Of a DNA stretch of 64,000 bases, positions 4,749 to 64,000 are shown piece after piece (position 1 is the first letter of the stretch; each line of letters opens with the position of its first letter). The notes beneath the pieces are model-generated. The model saw nothing but the letters and a program-made list of their open reading frames with translations, was not told the origin of the DNA and searched no databases. A program made the position numbers and the translations under genes. Source of the DNA: Octopus sinensis (Eukaryota); the NCBI RefSeq assembly GCF_006345805.1, contig NC_043015.1, positions 31,310,001 to 31,374,000 of the forward strand. The letters are read 5' to 3'.

Positions 4749-4751
<3 letters not shown>

Positions 4752-4904
4752 GCTGTGTGGTAAGGAGCTTGCTAACCAACCACATGGTTCCGGGTTCAGT
4801 CCCACTGCGTGGCATCTTGGGCAAGTGTCTTCTGCTATAGCCCCGGGCCAACCAATGCCTTGTGAGTGGATTTGGTAGACGGAAACTGAAAGAAGCCTGT
4901 CGTA

Positions 4905-5661: not shown

Positions 5662-6062
5662 TACTCTTTTACTCTTTTACTTGTTTCAGTCATTTGACTG
5701 CGGCCATGCTGGAGCACCGCCTTTAGTCGAGCAAATCGACCCCAGGACTTATTCTTTGTAAGCCTAGTACTTATTCTATCAGTCTCTTTTGCTGAACCGC
5801 TAAGTGACGGGGACGTAAACACACCAGCATCGGTTGTCAAGCAATGCTAGGGGGACAAACACAGACACACAAACACATATATATATATATACATATATAC
5901 GACAGGCTTCTTACAGTTTCCGTCTACCAAATCCACTCACAAGGCATTGGTTGGCCCGGGGCTATAGCAGAAGACACTTGCCCAAGATGCCACACAGTGG
6001 GACTGAACCCGGAACCATGTGGTTGGTTAGCAAGCTACTTACCACACAGCCACTCCTGCGCC
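5662..6062 (-). mobile_element. SINE family S1
   Basis: Reverse complement of the S1 consensus. Confidence 0.85.
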
Positions 6063-7631: not shown

Positions 7632-7806
7632 GGCGCAGGAGTGGTTGTGTGGTAAGTAGCTTGCTTACCAACCACATGGTTCCGGGTTCAGTTCCACTGT
7701 GTGGCACCTTGGCCAAGTGTCTTCTACTATAGCCTCGGGCCGACCAAAGCCTTGTGAGTGGATTTGGTAGACGGAAACTGAAAGAAGCCCGTCGTATATA
7801 TGTGTA

Positions 7807-8410: not shown

Positions 8411-10878
8411 ATTGTAGGGCAAAGGGAATGGGTGCATGAATAGAGCAAAATATAAAAAAAAAAAAACATAGAAAAGGAAATGATGAACTAGTGAGGGGGT
8501 CTCTGTTCACAGTTGTTATTCAGCCTGCTAGAAATAGTACAGCTAAGAACGTGGCAACCTGGCAGAGACGTTAGCATGCCTGGCAAAGTGCTTAGCAGTA
8601 TTTTGTCTGCCACTACATTCTGAGTTCAAATTCCGCCAAGGTCGACTTTGCCTTTCATCCTTTTTGGGTCGATAAATTAAGTACCAGTTACGCACTGGAA
8701 TCGATATAATCGACTTAATCCGTTTGTCTGTCCTTGATTGTCCCTACTGTGTTTAGCCCCTTGTGTGTAGTAAAGAAATAGGTATTTCGTCTGCTGCTAC
8801 GTTCTGAGTTCAAATTCCGCCGAGGTCGACTTTGCCTTTCATCCTTTCGGGGTCGATTAAACAAGTACCAGTTATGCACTGGGGTCGATATAATCAACTT
8901 AATCCAGCCTCCCACACCTACCCTACAATGTCATTGAAAGAAAAGAACAATCGCATCATCAAGATCTCAAAGCAGCAAGATGATGCATGATTGACTCAAA
9001 TTAATCGTTATCTTTTGAGAGAGTGATCTGAATACTAAAAGCTTAAAACAACCAGAACTTATACTAGCAAGAAAATTGCAGCAAAGCTGCATGGTAGCGA
9101 TGTCAGATGTGGCATGCAGACCATCATATGACTTGTTCTATTCTTCTCTTCCATTTGACGAATTCAGTGTGCACGTGCGCATTGCATGTTCATACTTCTC
9201 TTTCTGGCTCCTGCTCAAAACAAGTTTACAGATCACAACCATCTCACGAACATGTGTTCACGAGGAGTGCTTCACGCTCTGACGGTTTTGAAATAAAGGC
9301 ACAGAATATAAGAATTGTACAAAAAATTGTATTTGTCTGATCAGTCATTAAAAATTGCCAACACGTATTGGTAGGTGACATAAGGGTGAGTGGCACTGTA
9401 AATTTGTTCAACTATTTGAATGTATATAAGGTGGTTCTATAGTTAATTTGTACATAAAACTATTCGTCTATAGGATAATGCTTGAATATATACATGTGTA
9501 TTGTATGAAATTTGTTTTGATTAGGAATTTTCTGGACAGTTTATTTAGTATTGTTGAATAAAGTCGTGCATAAGATCCAGTCAAAATGAATTTTATTATA
9601 GACTTGACTCTACATCTAGTATTGATTCTCTCCACCATTCCACCATCAGTAAATGTTCTGATATTATTTCTTAAATTAACAACCCCGTCATCATTTACCG
9701 TTCACTTTCGATGCTGGCTTGGGTGGGACGGTTTGACAGAGAGCCAGAAAGCTGCAAAGTTTTGTCAGGCTCTGATGTCTTCTATGGCTGGGTGCCTTTC
9801 CTAACACCAACCACTTTACAGAGCATACTGGGTGCTTTTGTGTGTGTGTGTATGTGAGAGAGAGAGAGAGAGAGTGTGTGTGTGTGTGAGAGAGAGAGAG
9901 TGTGTGTGTGTGTATGTTGAGGCACATGGCTTAGTGGTTAGGGTGTTGCACTTATGATGGTAAGATTCTGGTTTCAATTCCTGGACCAGGTGATTCATTG
10001 TGTTCTTGAGCAAAACACTTCATTTCACATAGTCCACTCAGATGGCAAAAATGAGTAACACTGTGATGGACTGGCATCCTATCCAAGAGGAAAACATATG
10101 CACCACAGAATCTATGGAAACTGGCAATTATATACCATGTGATCACATGGCTGACCAGATTATCAGATGTTGTTACACACCACTGGTCACAATGTGATTT
10201 GCAATGTTTTAACCTTTGGATGACACCACCCTGCTGGCAACGTGAGCAGGCCAACATTTTCCCTGATTGAAAAGGGGGACTAGGGCAACATGAAATTAAA
10301 TGTTTTGCTCAAGAACACAACTCACTACACATCAAAATTGAACTTTTAGCAGATAGAAACTTTGCTGTAGTTTTATCATTTTCTTTTTTACCTAATACTT
10401 TTATCATTTCCTGTGAGTGTGTCTCAGTTTCTGAATGTGTTCACCGTATCCCTGTCTGTATAAGAAGTGGTCAAAAGTGTTGCTGACAAGGAGAGCATCT
10501 GGCTGTAAAGCTATGCCTCAGAAAAGGTATCCAACAAATGGGAAGATGGATGTAAAAAAAAAAAAAAAAAAACGAAAAAAACGTTGATGTTTTGATATAC
10601 AAGTAGGGTACTGAAAAGTTCCTGGCTTTAAGGATTTCACAAAAGACCTGGCTGGAAGCCCAATCTTCTGGGTTCTTTTACAGGGCTTAGAAAAACTGAA
10701 GGACCACTGCAATAAGTGTGTAAGTTTGAGGGAGGAATATGTTGAATAAAATCATAATTAACTGATCCTTCTGTATTTTTGATGAGCAATTTGCTTAAAG
10801 TAATTAATATTGATTTCTCTTCAGATTTCAATTTAGTAATAGGAAACCTTTCTTCTTTTCTTTTTTCCTCATCTCCAG

Positions 10879-14626: not shown

Positions 14627-15014
14627 TTCCCTATTAATAATCCTTTCTACTAAAGGCACAAGGGCTGAAATTTTGTGATAGGGGGCTAGTTGATTACATC
14701 AACCCCAGTGTTTCACTGGTACTCAATTTATTGACCCTGAAAGGATGAAAGGCAAAGTCAGCATTGGTGGAATTTGAACTCAGAACGTAAAGACAGATGA
14801 AATGCCACTAAACATTTTGCCTGATGTGCTAACGATTCTGCCAGCTCTCCACCTTCTTCCTTGTTAATAATAAGAGTAATTAATAATCATAATAATTTTT
14901 GTTTATTTTAGTTATTATTTTTTTTACCTTCTTTCCAGGATTAACAGTTTTAAGACTAACATATTTTTCCGTTATATTTCATTTATCGGATAATGTTATT
15001 TTAATTACCTCTAG

Positions 15015-15147
15015 AACTTTTAATACTTGCCGAAACAACCTTCAGACAAGAGTGACAAAGCTTTTTAGTAAAGCTCTCCAAACAGAAAAGGTTCCTCTAT
15101 CTACACAATATGGTGCACTTGTTGGTCTTGGAGAGCAAGGACAAGAG
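15015..15147 (+). CDS. TAF6: TAF6 exon (TFNTCRNNLQTRVTKLFSKAL...YGALVGLGEQGQE)
   Basis: ctctag| acceptor, GAG|gtaatg donor, 133 nt. Matches TAF6 NNIQSRITKTF...YGSIAGLAELG. Confidence 0.95.
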
Positions 15148-15293
15148 GTAATGTCAGACTTTTCTAAGCTACTATCTTATTTTCGTATTTATGTTTTTGT
15201 TTTTATGCTCTTGCTAAATTTCCTCCCCCCCCCCATCTTCTCTGCTCAGTTACTGACATCTAAACAAGGAAAACACTTCTCTCTACATTACAG

Positions 15294-15419
15294 GTTGTGA
15301 AAGCTTTCATTGTACCCCATTTGAAGGTTCTTGGTGACCGGTTAAAAGCAGTTATTGACAGCCCTGTTGTGAATAGTTTGGACAAGCTTGCTGTTGATCA
15401 CGTGAAAAAGATTTTGTTG
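15294..15419 (+). CDS. TAF6: TAF6 exon (VVKAFIVPHLKVLGDRLKAVIDSPVV...DHVKKILL)
   Basis: ttacag| acceptor, TTG|gtaatt donor, 126 nt in frame. Matches TAF6 VIKTLILPRL...DHVQSLLL. Confidence 0.93.
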
Positions 15420-17887: not shown

Positions 17888-18048
17888 CGGGCTTCTTTCA
17901 GTTTCCGTCTACCAAATCCACTCACAAGGCATTGGTCAGCCCGGGGCTATAGCAGAAGACACTTGCCCAAGATGCCACGCAGTGGGACTGAACCTGGAAC
18001 CATGTGGTTGGTAAGCAAGCTACTTACCACACAGCCACTCCTGCGCCT
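17641..18048 (-). mobile_element. SINE family S1
   Basis: Full copy. Ends about 65 nt before the TAF6 exon at 18113. Confidence 0.85.
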
Positions 18049-22705: not shown

Positions 22706-23846
22706 ATGGGCCCAAGACCTCGCATGACCTTGGAGAGACGGTACGAGGCTCTCTCGTGGCGTGGGAAGCTGTCGGAGGCTGCAATAGCCAGAAAACTTGG
22801 TGTAGCCAGGCGCAAAATTCAGTGCTTATTTAAGAAATACGAGGAAACCGGATCAGCAGCTGACAAAAAGGGTAGGGGACGGAAGAGGCTGATGACCCAG
22901 CGGGAGGACCGGATGCTGATCCAAAAGTCACTGAACAACCAAAGGGCAACGAGCCGGCAACTGGCGGAGGAGATGCAAAAGGAGACAGGGAAGCAGTTGT
23001 CTACAACCACCGTCAAGACCAGATTACTGGAAGCTGGTCTAAAATTCTGTAGAGCCGCCCGTAAGCCACTCCTTACAGCCCAAAACCGGAAGAGGCAGCT
23101 GCTCTGGGCCCGTGCCCACAAGACATGGACCGTGCAGCAGTGGCGGACAGTGATGTTCACTGACGAGTCGCGATTCAGTCTCGTCAGTGACAAGCCTGTC
23201 CATGTGTGACGCCGCAGGGGTGAGCGCTTCAACAAAGACTGCATTGCTCCCACCATGAAGCATGGTGTGGGGGGCGTTCAGCTACAGTGGTGTTGGGCGG
23301 CTCTATGCCGTCGAAGGCAACATCAACGCAGCAAAGTACGTTGAGATAGTACGGCATGCTGCCTACCCGCTGCAGGATACCTCTTTGGTGGCGAGGAGTA
23401 CGTGCTCCAGCAGGACAACGCGCTCCCCACACAGCCAAGCTCACAACCGGTTTCTTCAAGGACCATGGGGTGACGGTCATGGACTGGCCTGGCCAGTCAC
23501 CTGATCTGAACCCTATTGAGAACCTCTGGAGTCAATTGGGTAGGGATTTGAATGTGCAGCAATACAGGAACCGACACGAGCTGTTTGGGGCACTTCTTGC
23601 TGCATGGAGGGCCATCCCTGCAGGCACTCATAGACAGCATGCTGGCCCGCGTAGCAGCTGTCATTGCTGCCAAAGCAGGAGCAACAAGATATTGACTAAA
23701 TTTCAGGATTAATAACAATTATGTGGTATGCTGGGATATGTTTTAATAAATTTTTGATTAAAAACGAGTTTGTTTCTGATGATAAGCTAATTAAATTAAG
23801 AAAATGTAGAAATTTGAGAAGTGCTAATTAATTTCTGATGCAAGTG
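22706..23846 (+). mobile_element. Tc1-family (DD34E) transposon with a disrupted transposase (22706-23695)
   Basis: HTH N-terminus, VMFTDESRF, QQDNA and WPGQSPDLNPIENLW motifs, with 34 residues between D and E once one frameshift is corrected. Premature TGA at 23207 plus frameshifts. Right end ...gcaagtg|TA; no left TIR recognised. Confidence 0.92.
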
Positions 23847-29746: not shown

Positions 29747-29814
29747 ATTGTTCCACTCGGACATAACAGAAATTCTGTAATTGAGAAAAAAACAACTGAC
29801 GAAGTGTGAACAAT
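29743..29814 (+). other. EIF4A: eIF4A exon 1: 5'UTR plus the first two bases (AT, 29813-29814) of the start codon
   Basis: ATG-free leader ending ...gaacaAT|gtgagt. Splicing to tttcag|G at 43057 rebuilds ATG in frame with the helicase, with A at -3. Confidence 0.7.
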
Positions 29815-43056: not shown

Positions 43057-43114
43057 GTCTTCAGAATCATCGCAAAAGATTCCAACTCACGAAGATTGTA
43101 GCAGTGAGATTGAA
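43057..43114 (+). CDS. EIF4A: eIF4A exon 2 ((AT)G + SSESSQKIPTHEDCSSEIE)
   Basis: Pyrimidine tract then tttcag| acceptor, GAA|gtaagt donor. Ends in IE, which joins SN to give the conserved IESN. Confidence 0.85.
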
Positions 43115-44624: not shown

Positions 44625-44757
44625 TCAAACTATGATGAAATTGTCTCTACATTTGATGAGATGAAACTGCGGAACTCACTGTTAAGAGGGATATATGCTT
44701 ATGGTTTTGAAAAGCCTTCTCTTATCCAGCAAAGAGCAATTGTACCTTGTATAAAAG
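44625..44757 (+). CDS. EIF4A: eIF4A exon 3 (SNYDEIV...[26 protein letters not shown]), Q motif
   Basis: ttctag| acceptor, G|gtaaat donor. eIF4A Q-motif region. Confidence 0.97.
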
Positions 44758-45190: not shown

Positions 45191-45330
45191 GTCATGATGT
45201 TATTGCCCAAGCTCAGTCGGGCACAGGAAAGACTGCCACCTTTTCTATTGCCATTTTGGAACAGTTGGATATGGATCTCCCTGAGTGTCAAGCTCTGGTC
45301 CTGGCTCCCACTAGGGAATTGGCCCAACAG
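45191..45330 (+). CDS. EIF4A: eIF4A exon 4 (AQSGTGKT motif I, PTRELA motif Ia)
   Basis: ttttag| acceptor, CAG|gtaact donor. Frame continuous. Confidence 0.98.
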
Positions 45331-50655: not shown

Positions 50656-51040
50656 ACTCTTTACTCTTACTTTTTTACTTGTTTCAGTCATTTGACTGCA
50701 GCCATGCTGGAGCACTGCCTTTAATCGAGCAACTCGACCCTGGGACTTATTCTTTTGTAAGCCCAGTACTTATTCTATCGGTCTCTTTTGCCGAATCGCT
50801 AGGTAACGGGGACATAAACACACCAGCATCGGTTGTCATGCAATGCTAGGGGGACAAACACACACACGCATATATATACGACGGGCTTCTTTCAGTTTCC
50901 GTCTACCAAATCCACTCACAAGGCTTTGGTCGGCCCGAGGCTATAGAAGAAGACACTTGCCCAAGGTGCCACGCAGTGGGACTGAACCCGGGACCATGTG
51001 GTTGGTAAACAAGCTAATTACCACACAGCCACTCCTGCAC
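50656..51040 (-). mobile_element. SINE family S1
   Basis: Full copy just upstream of eIF4A exon 5. Confidence 0.85.
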
Positions 51041-51120: not shown

Positions 51121-51286
51121 ATTCAGAAAGTCGTTGTGGCTCTTGGAGATTACATGGACGCAAGATGCCATGCGTGTATTGGCGGAACAAATGTTCATGA
51201 TGATAGGTTACAATTGAGTGAAGGTGTTCACACGGTTGTTGGAACTCCTGGACGTGTCAGTGATATAATCCAACGAAAATGGCTTG
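51121..51286 (+). CDS. EIF4A: eIF4A exon 5 ([12 protein letters not shown]...GG...TPGRVSDII...)
   Basis: ccgcag| acceptor, G|gtaagt donor, 166 nt. GG doublet and motif Ib. Confidence 0.97.
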
Positions 51287-52439: not shown

Positions 52440-52549
52440 TAACTTCCCATATTAAAATATTTGTCCTTGATGAAGCAGATGAGATGTTGTCTCGAGGTTT
52501 CAAAGATCAAATTTACAGTGTTTTTAGATACATGCCCCAGAATGTTCAG
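52440..52549 (+). CDS. EIF4A: eIF4A exon 6 (DEAD box: [19 protein letters not shown])
   Basis: ttttag| acceptor, CAG|gtttgt donor. GFKDQIY is the eIF4A1/2-type sequence rather than eIF4A3. Confidence 0.98.
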
Positions 52550-54345: not shown

Positions 54346-54489
54346 GTGATATTATTATCAGCTACTATGCCACCAGATGTCTTTGAAGTCACCAGACAAT
54401 TTATGAGGAAGCCAATTAAGATTTTAGTGAAAAAGGAAGAGTTGACTCTTGAAGGTATCAAACAATTCTTCGTTCATATTGAGAAAGAG
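54346..54489 (+). CDS. EIF4A: eIF4A exon 7 (SAT motif III; [14 protein letters not shown])
   Basis: caacag| acceptor, GAG|gtaagt donor, 144 nt. Confidence 0.98.
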
Positions 54490-55469: not shown

Positions 55470-55878
55470 GTACTCTCTCTTTACTCTTTTACTCTTTTAC
55501 TTGTTTCAGTCATTTGACTGCGGCCATGCTGGAGCACCGCCTTTAGTCGAGCAACTCGACCCCGGGACTTATTCTTTTGTAAGCCCAGTACTTATTCTTT
55601 CGGTCTCTTTTGCCGAACCGCTCAGTGACGGGGACATAAACACACCAGCATCGGTTGTCAAGCAATGCTAGGGGACAAACACATACACACACATATATAT
55701 ATATACATATATACGACAGGCTTCTTTCAGTTTCTGTCTACCAAATCCACTCACAAGGCATTGGTCGGCCCGGGGCTATAGTAGAAGACACTTGCCCAAG
55801 GTGCCACGCAGTGGGACTGAACCCAGAACCATGTGGTTGGTAAACAAGCTACTTACCACACAGCCACTCCTGCGCCCA
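55470..55878 (-). mobile_element. SINE family S1
   Basis: Full copy upstream of eIF4A exon 8. Confidence 0.85.
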
Positions 55879-55949: not shown

Positions 55950-56087
55950 GAATGGAAACTAGACACATTAACAGATTTATATGGAACTCTGACAATCACT
56001 CAAGCCGTTATATTCTGTAATACTCGTAGGAAAGTAGATTGGCTCACCGATCGGATGTTGGCAAAAGATTTCACTGTTTCTGCTATG
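55950..56087 (+). CDS. EIF4A: eIF4A exon 8 ([32 protein letters not shown])
   Basis: tttcag| acceptor, ATG|gtaatt donor. Motif IV. Confidence 0.98.
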
Positions 56088-58168: not shown

Positions 58169-58339
<171 letters not shown>

Positions 58340-58442: not shown

Positions 58443-58587
58443 AATTGGTAGAGGAGGACGGTTTGGTCGTAAAGGTGTTGCCATCAACTTCATCACCGAG
58501 GATGATGTTCGAATACTCAATGACATAGAACAATTTTACAACACTTCCATCATAGAGATGCCAACGAATGTGGCTGACTTGATTTAA
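58443..58587 (+). CDS. EIF4A: eIF4A exon 10 ([13 protein letters not shown] motif VI ... NVADLI*)
   Basis: T-tract then tcag| acceptor, TAA at 58585-58587. The joined CDS is 401 aa without a stop. Confidence 0.98.
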
Positions 58588-59956: not shown

Positions 59957-60120
59957 TGGCGCAGGAGTGGCTGTGTGGTAAGTAGCTTGCTTACCAACCA
60001 CATGGTTCCGGGTTCAGTCCCACTGCGTGACACCTTGGGCAAGTGTCTTCTACTATAGCCTCGGGCCGACCAAAGCCTTGTGAGTGGATTTGGTAGACGG
60101 AAACTGAAAAGAAGCCTGTC

Positions 60121-62716: not shown

Positions 62717-64000
62717 TTACAAAGAATAAGTCCTGGGGTCAATTTGCTCGACTAATGGTGGTGCTGCAGTCATAATGACTGAAAATCCTAAGTTTGATTT
62801 TATTACTATAATTATCCCAAATGGCAACTGGCAAATATTTTGCCTCATTTCAAGATAAGGTACATTAATTTGAATTAATTTAAATATAGATATAATTAGT
62901 ACCAGATTTTATTCTTTCGGTAAATATTTCGTACCTCAGTGTGGAATAATTTTTTCCAGGTTTTTCGGGTGCATTGGATATGTCTAACCTCCAAACCTGC
63001 CACAAGCCACTTTTTCCTGGAAAAGAAGGGTAGGAGGGGTGGTGACGACCTTGAAGTTTCCCACCAAGGGAGTTTTGTTTCGCAGTTCTTTTTGCCTTTT
63101 CTGGGTTATTTTGCATGCCTTTAATGAGTGTGGCATTGAAATCACATGTAAACAGCTCCTTTTTTCAGAAAAGGACAGATTTTGGCTGCTATTTCTAGCA
63201 TGCCCTGCTATCACGTAACAGCTATTTGTGTTCACACCGAAATATTTACCAACTTTTCCTTCCGTTTATTTTTCCACTTTATGGAAATCCATGTTTTCTC
63301 TGACATCCAGCTCAGCGAGGTCGTGGGTCAAGGGGAAACACGTCAATCACTGTTACCTCTTGACAGGACAAAGAAATTTCCTGCTGTCTTTGTAAGCAAC
63401 AAGTGGGTGGATTTAGTTTCAAATTTTGCCTATCATGGACTTTGTTGTCAAATTTCTTAATTTTTATTTAAGGAACATTTGGCTGCTATTTACAAGAGGT
63501 CAAGCAATAATGCTAAATGATTACACACTGAGGTGAGTGATGTAAATTTCTGGCAAATTAAGTGATTTGATTTCAGTCCTCACTTAGAGCAATTTCACTT
63601 CTTCTTACAACATTCACCCGGAGTGGGTTGAGCTGGCTTCATTCATCCTCAATGCTGCATCTCTCACAAACGCCAACCAGGCCTGGCAATTTGAGACTAA
63701 CGACCGCGTGATCAACTACTCATTCCAGCGGCAAACACCGTAGATATGGGAGCCTAGGTTGGGTTCACTTCACTTATATATTAATAATTTCTTTGGGAAA
63801 AGCATAAATGTTACATCACATTTTCTGCAGTTTACATATATCATCTTTGCACCTAGTCGAAAAGAAAACTATTTCACACAAGTAATGTTGACGACTTCAG
63901 TTAAGTTTGTATATCATAGGAAACCAAAAGCACTAATGTTTCGAGTAAAGCTCTTTATCAGTTATGACTTTGCTACTCGGGAACGGGAGATAGCAACAAA

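Follow-up and report, generated by a model that had tools for sequence, protein, structure and literature searches.

The 64,000-nucleotide stretch of the Octopus sinensis genome analysed here (NCBI RefSeq assembly GCF_006345805.1, contig NC_043015.1, forward-strand positions 31,310,001 to 31,374,000; hereafter the window, with position 1 as its first letter) contains a complete gene for an eIF4A-like DEAD-box protein. Its encoded protein has serine at the position of Phe163 of human eIF4A1, a residue of the pocket in which rocaglates clamp the factor onto RNA. Is this gene a functional member of the family, how old is it, and what does its serine imply for the drug pocket? A first-pass annotation, made from the sequence alone, had proposed a divergent, probably lineage-specific eIF4A paralog predicted to be insensitive to rocaglates. 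Throughout, PAR denotes the window eIF4A gene and its orthologs, and CAN the canonical neighbouring eIF4A copy. We find PAR to be the upstream member of a tandem eIF4A pair of coleoid cephalopods and to be under clear purifying selection. Its serine appears to have arisen on a cephalopod baseline other than phenylalanine.

The eIF4A gene of the window

PAR consists of ten exons on the + strand, encodes an intact open reading frame of 401 amino acids, and has GT-AG boundaries at all nine introns. Eight collinear coding blocks (44.6-58.6 kb, + strand) were located by tblastn with human eIF4A1 as query, and the first two exons by way of the ortholog in O. bimaculoides, LOC106875421 (XP_014779042.1, P0004 in our protein collection). 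The end of exon 1 (29813..29814; +), which holds 5' untranslated region and the 'AT' of the start codon, is homologous to the start of the LOC106875421 gene call (positions 10001-10002 of locus L001). Its donor is conserved (GTGAACAAT followed by GTGAGT), with a CCAAT box and a CACGTG element upstream. Intron 1 thus interrupts the ATG, whose G, at 43057, opens coding exon 2 (43057..43114; +; G plus SSESSQKIPTHEDCSSEIE); this exon encodes the variable N-terminal tail and was delimited by tblastn with P0004, by AG/GT boundaries and by reading frame.

The remaining exons, likewise on the + strand, carry the helicase core. Exon 3 (44625..44757) encodes the Q motif (GFEKPSLIQ), exon 4 (45191..45330) motifs I (AQSGTGKT) and Ia (PTRELA), exon 5 (51121..51286) motif Ib in the form TPGRV-S-DII, and exon 6 (52440..52549) motif II, the DEAD box, together with the sequence KDQIY-SV-F. 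Motif III (SAT) lies in exon 7 (54346..54489), motif IV (VIFCNTRR) in exon 8 (55950..56087), motif V in exon 9 (58169..58338), and motif VI (HRIGRGGR) in exon 10 (58443..58587), which ends with a TAA stop codon (58585-58587). All nine motifs, Q, I, Ia, Ib and II to VI, are intact in the PAR translation, as the first-pass annotation had stated for the catalytic motifs.

Pfam recognises DEAD (PF00270, 158 bits, residues 54-215) and Helicase_C (PF00271, 116 bits, residues 254-362) in the protein and no other domain. The best matches in the PDB are human eIF4A-I (670 bits), eIF4A-III (592 bits) and yeast eIF4A (555 bits), and PAR groups within metazoan eIF4A-I-like sequences. By these sequence comparisons PAR is classed as an eIF4A1/2-type DEAD-box factor. 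Assignment to eIF4A3 was rejected on the score of 592 bits against eIF4A-III versus 670 bits against eIF4A-I.

The codon in question, AGT at 51259..51261 (+), is codon 158 of the spliced frame. In a phmmer alignment with PDB 5ZC9 chain A (human eIF4A1 in its RocA complex), Ser158 stands opposite human F163 ('tpgrvFdml'). In the same alignment Ser193 (AGT, 52517-52519) and Val194 (GTT, 52520-52522), two adjoining codons of exon 6 (52517..52522; +), stand opposite D198 and I199 ('kdqiyDIf'); neither of these two states is specific to PAR, as set out below. The earlier reading of these codons was accurate to the base, and its numbering equivalences for F163, D198 and I199 agree with the structural template. 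It had also judged a base-call error unlikely. Such an error is excluded, because the O. bimaculoides ortholog has the same AGT at the 163 position in an independent assembly. The pocket region is without insertions or deletions relative to the human protein, and T158, P159, F192 and Q195 (human numbering, used from here on) are conserved. In both O. sinensis and O. bimaculoides, PAR has Ser at 163, a non-stacking residue (not F, Y or H) of the kind by which rocaglate-resistant variants are defined.

A tandem eIF4A pair in octopus and cuttlefish

The closest protein to PAR, the product of O. bimaculoides LOC106875421, is annotated as 'ATP-dependent RNA helicase eIF4A-like' and is 98% identical. 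The second eIF4A of O. bimaculoides, LOC106875415 (P0011), is the CAN copy. It is 80% identical to PAR and differs by one amino acid from the single 'translation initiation factor 4A' annotated in O. vulgaris and O. sinensis. On one strand of the O. bimaculoides genome we find, in this order, TAF6, PAR (54,419,184-54,438,468), CAN (54,449,700-54,468,786) and a RING-finger gene, with ~11 kb between the two eIF4A genes. The arrangement in O. sinensis is similar: CAN starts ~9.2 kb past the end of the window and ~14.6 kb downstream of the stop codon of PAR, on the same strand, and the last 778 bases of the window are identical to the start of the CAN-bearing locus (CM016877.1). The cuttlefish Acanthosepion pharaonis likewise carries both genes on one strand of one contig, PAR (CAE1170747) at 269,767-340,304 and CAN (CAE1170749) at 386,493-393,225. 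PAR is thus upstream of CAN on the same strand in all three species. The O. vulgaris locus examined starts 10 kb upstream of CAN and does not reach PAR.

Exon structure was compared between the two genes in Octopus. The first two exons measure 2 and 58 nt in PAR and 5 and 61 nt in CAN, and from exon 3 onward the sizes are equal (133, 140, 166, 110, 144, 138, 170 and 145 nt). The start codon lies near intron 1 in both genes, and in PAR it is split by that intron. Given the identical exon sizes and intron positions, PAR is therefore a tandem duplicate made at the DNA level; an origin as a retrocopy was considered and rejected, since the intron positions are common to PAR and CAN.

Age of the duplication

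We placed the two copies in a neighbour-joining tree (200 bootstraps, 396 ungapped columns, few taxa). All cephalopod eIF4As form one clade (99% bootstrap), within which octopod and decapod CAN copies group together at 98% and the PAR copies at 59%. Quartet site patterns point the same way: 11 sites unite Octopus PAR with cuttlefish PAR and Octopus CAN with cuttlefish CAN, 2 favour grouping by species, and 1 the third topology. Polarised against 108 outgroup sequences, 4 states are PAR-derived and 5 are CAN-derived. The PAR copies of Octopus and cuttlefish share as synapomorphies W to Y at 23, V to I at 26, E to G at 263 and T to I at 378.

Because tree and quartet sites place the PAR copies together, and because the layout is common to octopus and cuttlefish, the duplication is dated on this sequence evidence to before the octopod-decapod split. 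With moderate confidence we regard the PAR copies of octopus and cuttlefish as orthologs that go back to a single duplication. The proposal of a divergent, lineage-specific paralog is thereby upheld by tandem synteny, tree and quartets alike, the lineage being the coleoid cephalopods.

Pocket residues in their cephalopod context

How unusual is serine at position 163? Among 116 close metazoan eIF4As, the residue is F in 56, Y in 37, H in 10, Q in 4, S in 3, M in 3, N in 2 and L in 1. The first-pass annotation had named Ser as a common state in molluscs among the findings that would undo its reading; this does not apply, since the 15 non-cephalopod molluscs examined carry Y, H, F or N. Within cephalopods, Octopus PAR has Ser (AGT), octopod CAN Gln (CAA), cuttlefish PAR Leu (CTT) and cuttlefish CAN His (CAT). 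From a His-like ancestor Gln and Leu are one nucleotide step away each, and Ser two steps. These codons fit a cephalopod ancestor that probably had His, encoded by CAT. PAR did not 'lose' F163, since CAN has Gln in octopods and His in the cuttlefish. The change from F163 to Ser that the comparison with human eIF4A1 had implied is, as judged from these codons, not one that took place on a Phe background.

Two observations on residue 163 stand apart from the octopus genes. A pair of JGI metatranscriptome contigs (P0012 and P0014) encode eIF4A-I-like proteins that differ at 6 of 389 amino acids and have Phe163 in one and Ser163 in the other, a further independent Ser163 among eIF4As close to the metazoan ones. 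In the cuttlefish, PAR has Leu163, the residue found in Aglaia, and the adjoining CAN has His163, which places a 'resistant-type' and a 'sensitive-type' residue within one genome.

The two changes in exon 6 are not peculiar to PAR. Valine at 199, listed earlier as an I199V change of this gene, is the normal invertebrate state (15 of 15 non-cephalopod molluscs and ~110 of the 116 close metazoan eIF4As); Ile is the minority, vertebrate-type residue. D198-to-Ser, also taken for a PAR trait, recurs as the same AGT in the canonical octopus copy. Position 198 is Asp without exception in close eIF4As from outside the cephalopods (108 of 108), and none of the 8 cephalopod sequences keeps it: Ser (AGT) stands there in Octopus PAR and CAN, Asn (AAT) in cuttlefish PAR and CAN, and Gly in Argonauta CAN. 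The state at 198 tracks the species rather than the paralog; either both copies changed in parallel, or a short tract of exon 6 underwent gene conversion. Arguably, the loss of D198 across cephalopods is a greater oddity than the serine at 163.

Residues 136-170 had been singled out as the most divergent block of PAR, and indeed they are the most divergent of its core, at 40% identity to human eIF4A1 and 54% to the canonical octopus copy. The accompanying idea of a remodelled RNA-proximal surface is overstated. The same block is the least conserved of the core in 108 other metazoan eIF4As (mean column conservation 0.79 vs 0.91), and the differences fall mostly in columns that are variable everywhere. 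Of the 291 columns with conservation of 90% or more among other metazoans, 15 are changed in PAR and 10 in the canonical octopus copy; the PAR changes are conservative (E/D, V/I, K/R, Y/F, M/I).

Selection and expression

Divergence between O. sinensis and O. bimaculoides was estimated pairwise from two PAR and two CAN sequences by the NG86, LWL85 and YN00 methods. The PAR coding sequences differ at 45 nucleotides and 10 amino acids (nonsynonymous divergence dN 0.011, synonymous divergence dS 0.13-0.15, dN/dS 0.07-0.08), the CAN coding sequences at 10 nucleotides and 1 amino acid (dN 0.001, dS 0.03, dN/dS 0.02-0.04). Intron divergence K between the two species is 0.081 for PAR and 0.085 for CAN, and the ratio of PAR dN to intron K is ~0.13. 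PAR is under clear purifying selection. Its protein evolves ~10 times faster than that of CAN (dN 0.011 vs 0.001), and synonymous sites are strongly constrained in CAN (dS ~0.03 vs 0.085 in introns), not in PAR. A faster protein without synonymous constraint would fit a PAR isoform that is less abundant or more specialised.

Cuttlefish PAR is transcribed, as several intronless Logan contigs carry it. Partial Octopus transcripts were sought with a 140-aa PAR query covering exons 4-7, which retrieved only fragments of at most 76% identity from unrelated organisms. A scan of metagenomes and metatranscriptomes with cuttlefish PAR, aimed at squid counterparts, gave a best match of 82% and none from a cephalopod.

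Predicted consequences for rocaglate clamping

Ring C of RocA stacks on F163, and the RocA amide carbonyl bonds Q195 (PMC11840593, PMC10187672); DMPatA contacts F163, Q195 and D198 (PMC10187672). In a survey of 365 eIF4As, Obermann et al. (2023) list Ser163, in the pattern TPSFQI, as resistant in Leishmania and Clavispora lusitaniae, and rocaglate resistance of L. amazonensis was confirmed in vitro (PMC10250355). The survey is without cephalopods, and the Octopus PAR pattern TPSFQV is absent from its 35 patterns (PMC10250355). With human eIF4A1 as scaffold, silvestrol thermal shifts amount to 9.74 °C for wild type, 9.33 °C for I199V, 6.41 °C for F163H, 5.56 °C for F163Q, 5.40 °C for F163S, 5.02 °C for F163G, 2.12 °C for F163L and 0.91 °C for F163L/I199M (PMC10250355 Table S5). 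On this scaffold F163S is intermediate and practically equal to F163Q, the canonical octopus state. Gln163 is predicted to be sensitive by Obermann et al. (PMC10250355), and the F163G type is resistant in C. elegans. The D198A substitution lowers thermal shifts by ~3-5 °C, residue 163 has little influence on clamping by PatA, and human eIF4A1 F163 mutants retain helicase activity (PMC11259845).

Is PAR then insensitive to rocaglates, as had been predicted? Ser163 does go with resistance in Leishmania and C. lusitaniae, and to that extent the prediction stands. 'Insensitive' is nevertheless too strong, given that F163S shifts by 5.40 °C, close to F163Q at 5.56 °C and far above F163L at 2.12 °C. 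By analogy with these mutants and organisms, reduced rocaglate clamping of PAR is plausible, and it would not be clearly more reduced than that of CAN. Reduced clamping has no obvious ecological meaning here, because rocaglates come from the terrestrial plant Aglaia.

The comparison with known eIF4A systems brings out what is shared and what is not. PAR is ~75% identical over its full length to human eIF4A1 as crystallised with RocA, polypurine RNA and AMPPNP (5ZC9) and has the same DEAD-box motifs, but it has Ser in place of F163, Ser in place of D198 and Val in place of I199. With vertebrates, where eIF4A1 and eIF4A2 coexist, cephalopods share the presence of two close paralogs; the cephalopod duplication is however independent, as indicated by the single cephalopod clade (99% bootstrap), and its products are still in tandem. 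Leishmania LeIF and C. lusitaniae eIF4A, both reported to be rocaglate-resistant (PMC10250355, PMC11259845), resemble Octopus PAR in combining Ser163 with retained T158, P159, F192 and Q195. They differ from it in their TPSFQI pattern, where Octopus PAR has TPSFQV and has lost D198 too, and Octopus is an animal host with the variant in one of two paralogs, not in its only or principal eIF4A.

Aglaia eIF4A (F163L/I199M) and the Ophiocordyceps variant share with PAR a non-aromatic residue 163, and cuttlefish PAR has exactly Leu163. The rocaglates made by the host plant are a clear agent of selection on Aglaia and on its parasitic fungus, whereas none is known for cephalopods; moreover, the octopus residue is Ser, and F163S on the human scaffold cuts clamping much less than Leu. 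The 14 animal isoform pairs of Obermann et al. (2023), which include sensitive/resistant dichotomies in helminths, likewise present two isoforms per genome that differ at a key pocket residue. Those pairs differ at 163 and 199. The Gln/Ser pair of Octopus and the His/Leu pair of cuttlefish lie outside that survey and form an ancient syntenic tandem.

Other features of the window

TAF6 is represented by exons (Pfam TAF6_C, E = 1.2e-9) at 14896-15297 (+) and on to ~19.8 kb, upstream of PAR as in O. bimaculoides. Between TAF6 and PAR there is a Tc1/mariner-type transposon remnant (22706-23709, +; HTH_Tnp_Tc3_2, E = 2.4e-17; DDE_3, E = 1.9e-8), with its frame broken between the two matched pieces. 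A 23-bp minisatellite at 1492-2580 comprises 48 copies with 93% matches (consensus TGTTACCTATCAGACCTCCCATT). A repeat of ~130 bp that resembles a short interspersed element occurs in 16 copies across the window, on both strands and at 77-96% identity, among them 4751-4881, 5921-6051, 7643-7773, 17906-18036, 50900-51030, 55736-55865 and 59969-60099; the copy at 50900-51030 stops ~90 bp upstream of PAR exon 5. The CAN coding sequence shows 100% nucleotide identity between O. sinensis and O. vulgaris, though the ~1 kb upstream of CAN at window positions 62992-64000 reaches only ~92% between the two species (O. vulgaris locus L004, gaps included).

Discussion

We searched the literature on cephalopod or octopus eIF4A and on LOC106875421 and found nothing relevant, nor a paper describing a second eIF4A in coleoids. 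How, then, is PAR best explained? With a probability of roughly three in four, we regard it as a functional tandem eIF4A duplicate of coleoids in which residue 163 has been drifting, with reduced clamping as a by-product. This account takes up what is observed for PAR, namely gene structure, tandem layout, orthology, purifying selection and residue states. A whole ten-exon gene of the eIF4A1/2 type would have been duplicated in tandem in the coleoid stem, PAR staying directly upstream of CAN. Judging by 75% identity and intact motifs, PAR most likely remains a DEAD-box RNA helicase that works with ATP in the initiation of translation, with predicted RNA-dependent ATPase activity, eIF4G binding and a part in cap-dependent initiation, and by analogy with vertebrate eIF4A1 and eIF4A2 it is probably an isoform of lower abundance or restricted to certain tissues or stages.

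Residue 163, in the same account, would be a weakly constrained surface residue on the RNA-binding face in invertebrates, where F, Y, H, Q, N, M, S and L all occur. From a probable His (CAT) it would have drifted to Gln in octopod CAN, to Leu in cuttlefish PAR and to Ser in Octopus PAR. Incidentally to this drift, Octopus PAR has no aromatic ring for rocaglate ring C to stack on and, like every sampled cephalopod copy, no D198. It would consequently be clamped on polypurine RNA less than the Phe, Tyr and His forms and roughly like the canonical Gln163 copy, to an extent that we infer from the mutants cited above.

Several points weigh against this account. The tree is a neighbour-joining tree of 396 columns, its PAR clade has a bootstrap of only 59%, and long-branch attraction could unite two fast copies; despite such attraction, the CAN clade at 98% leaves both PAR lineages outside. 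The gene sets of O. sinensis and O. vulgaris in our collection apparently lack the PAR protein, and an Octopus PAR transcript was not found there (P0004 is the only protein at 90% identity or more, and there is no transcript contig). The latter says little, because the canonical octopus protein is likewise without a Logan source in the collection. The drug response, finally, is extrapolated from human-scaffold mutants and distant organisms, and Obermann et al. stress that context alters such values (PMC10250355).

Could PAR instead be a duplicate under relaxed constraint, heading towards pseudogenisation, with Ser163 as one of many neutral hits? A protein evolving ~10 times faster than CAN, a dS at or above the intron rate, the longest branch of all cephalopod eIF4As for Octopus PAR in the tree, and the missing octopus transcript and gene-set entries (O. 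sinensis and O. vulgaris) would all suit such decay. The dN/dS of 0.07-0.08 largely refutes it, however, as does a dN of ~0.13 relative to intron K. Two species moreover have an intact frame with canonical splice sites, the catalytic motifs are preserved, only 15 of 291 highly conserved columns have changed, and those conservatively, and PAR has been kept since before the octopod-decapod split with a cuttlefish counterpart that is transcribed. We hold decay to be the least probable explanation of all. A change of function is a doubtful alternative of a different kind, in which substitutions on the RNA-binding face, at residues 163 and 165, would alter the choice of RNA or partner and direct PAR to a subset of mRNAs or to a role outside initiation. 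Octopus PAR-derived changes do cluster by the pocket (S163, and M165I at a Met that is 99% conserved elsewhere), accompanied by R141H, the synapomorphies with cuttlefish at 23, 26, 263 and 378 add to them, and long maintenance implies that the role of PAR is not wholly duplicated by CAN. Yet the substitutions are few and mostly conservative, published structures show F163 touching the drug without being a contact essential to RNA, and human F163 mutants retain helicase activity.

It is tempting to read the pocket as a record of chemical defence, with Ser163 of PAR and the loss of D198 selected by a natural clamping compound that reaches cephalopods or their prey, for example a marine pateamine-like macrolide, and PAR serving as a resistant back-up. 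Both inhibitor-contact positions are off the norm: D198 is present in 108 of 108 non-cephalopods and 0 of 8 cephalopods, and residue 163 is non-aromatic in three of the four cephalopod lineage-copies, with the Leu of rocaglate-producing Aglaia in cuttlefish PAR. D198 is a contact of pateamine, whose source is a marine sponge, and position 198 has changed in parallel in both copies of each lineage. Against this, rocaglates are products of terrestrial plants, and cephalopod exposure to eIF4A-clamping compounds is not known; residue 163 varies widely in animals without known exposure; clamping by PatA reportedly does not depend on residue 163 and depends on D198 only to a mild degree (PMC11259845); and Obermann et al. 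call the emergence of resistance 'serendipitous' (PMC10250355). Selection for drug resistance therefore seems very improbable to us. We are scarcely more inclined to a broader version, in which the PAR-CAN pocket of coleoids was remodelled as a whole by selection on the RNA-clamping surface, whether by a marine eIF4A-targeting product or for RNA selectivity, with PAR as the less clampable copy and adenosine-to-inosine recoding of its two AGT codons to Gly as a further possibility. Nothing found requires either an adaptive or an RNA-selectivity explanation.

The drifting, functional duplicate that we favour leaves the current understanding of the eIF4A mechanism unchanged. Ser163 was already on record as a naturally occurring variant; of the three changes by which the window gene was first set apart, two are not specific to PAR. 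More unusual are the age and synteny of the PAR-CAN pair, the disappearance of D198 from all sampled cephalopods and the Aglaia-like Leu163 of cuttlefish PAR. For eIF4A pharmacology, the octopus sequences enlarge the catalogue of pocket variants from which rocaglate and pateamine sensitivity is predicted, both by a new natural pattern, TPSFQV together with D198 loss, and by an animal clade new to it. They also illustrate that predictions made from human numbering only mislead when the baseline of the lineage is ignored. For the cephalopods themselves, the conserved second eIF4A beside CAN is a candidate tissue-specific translation factor.

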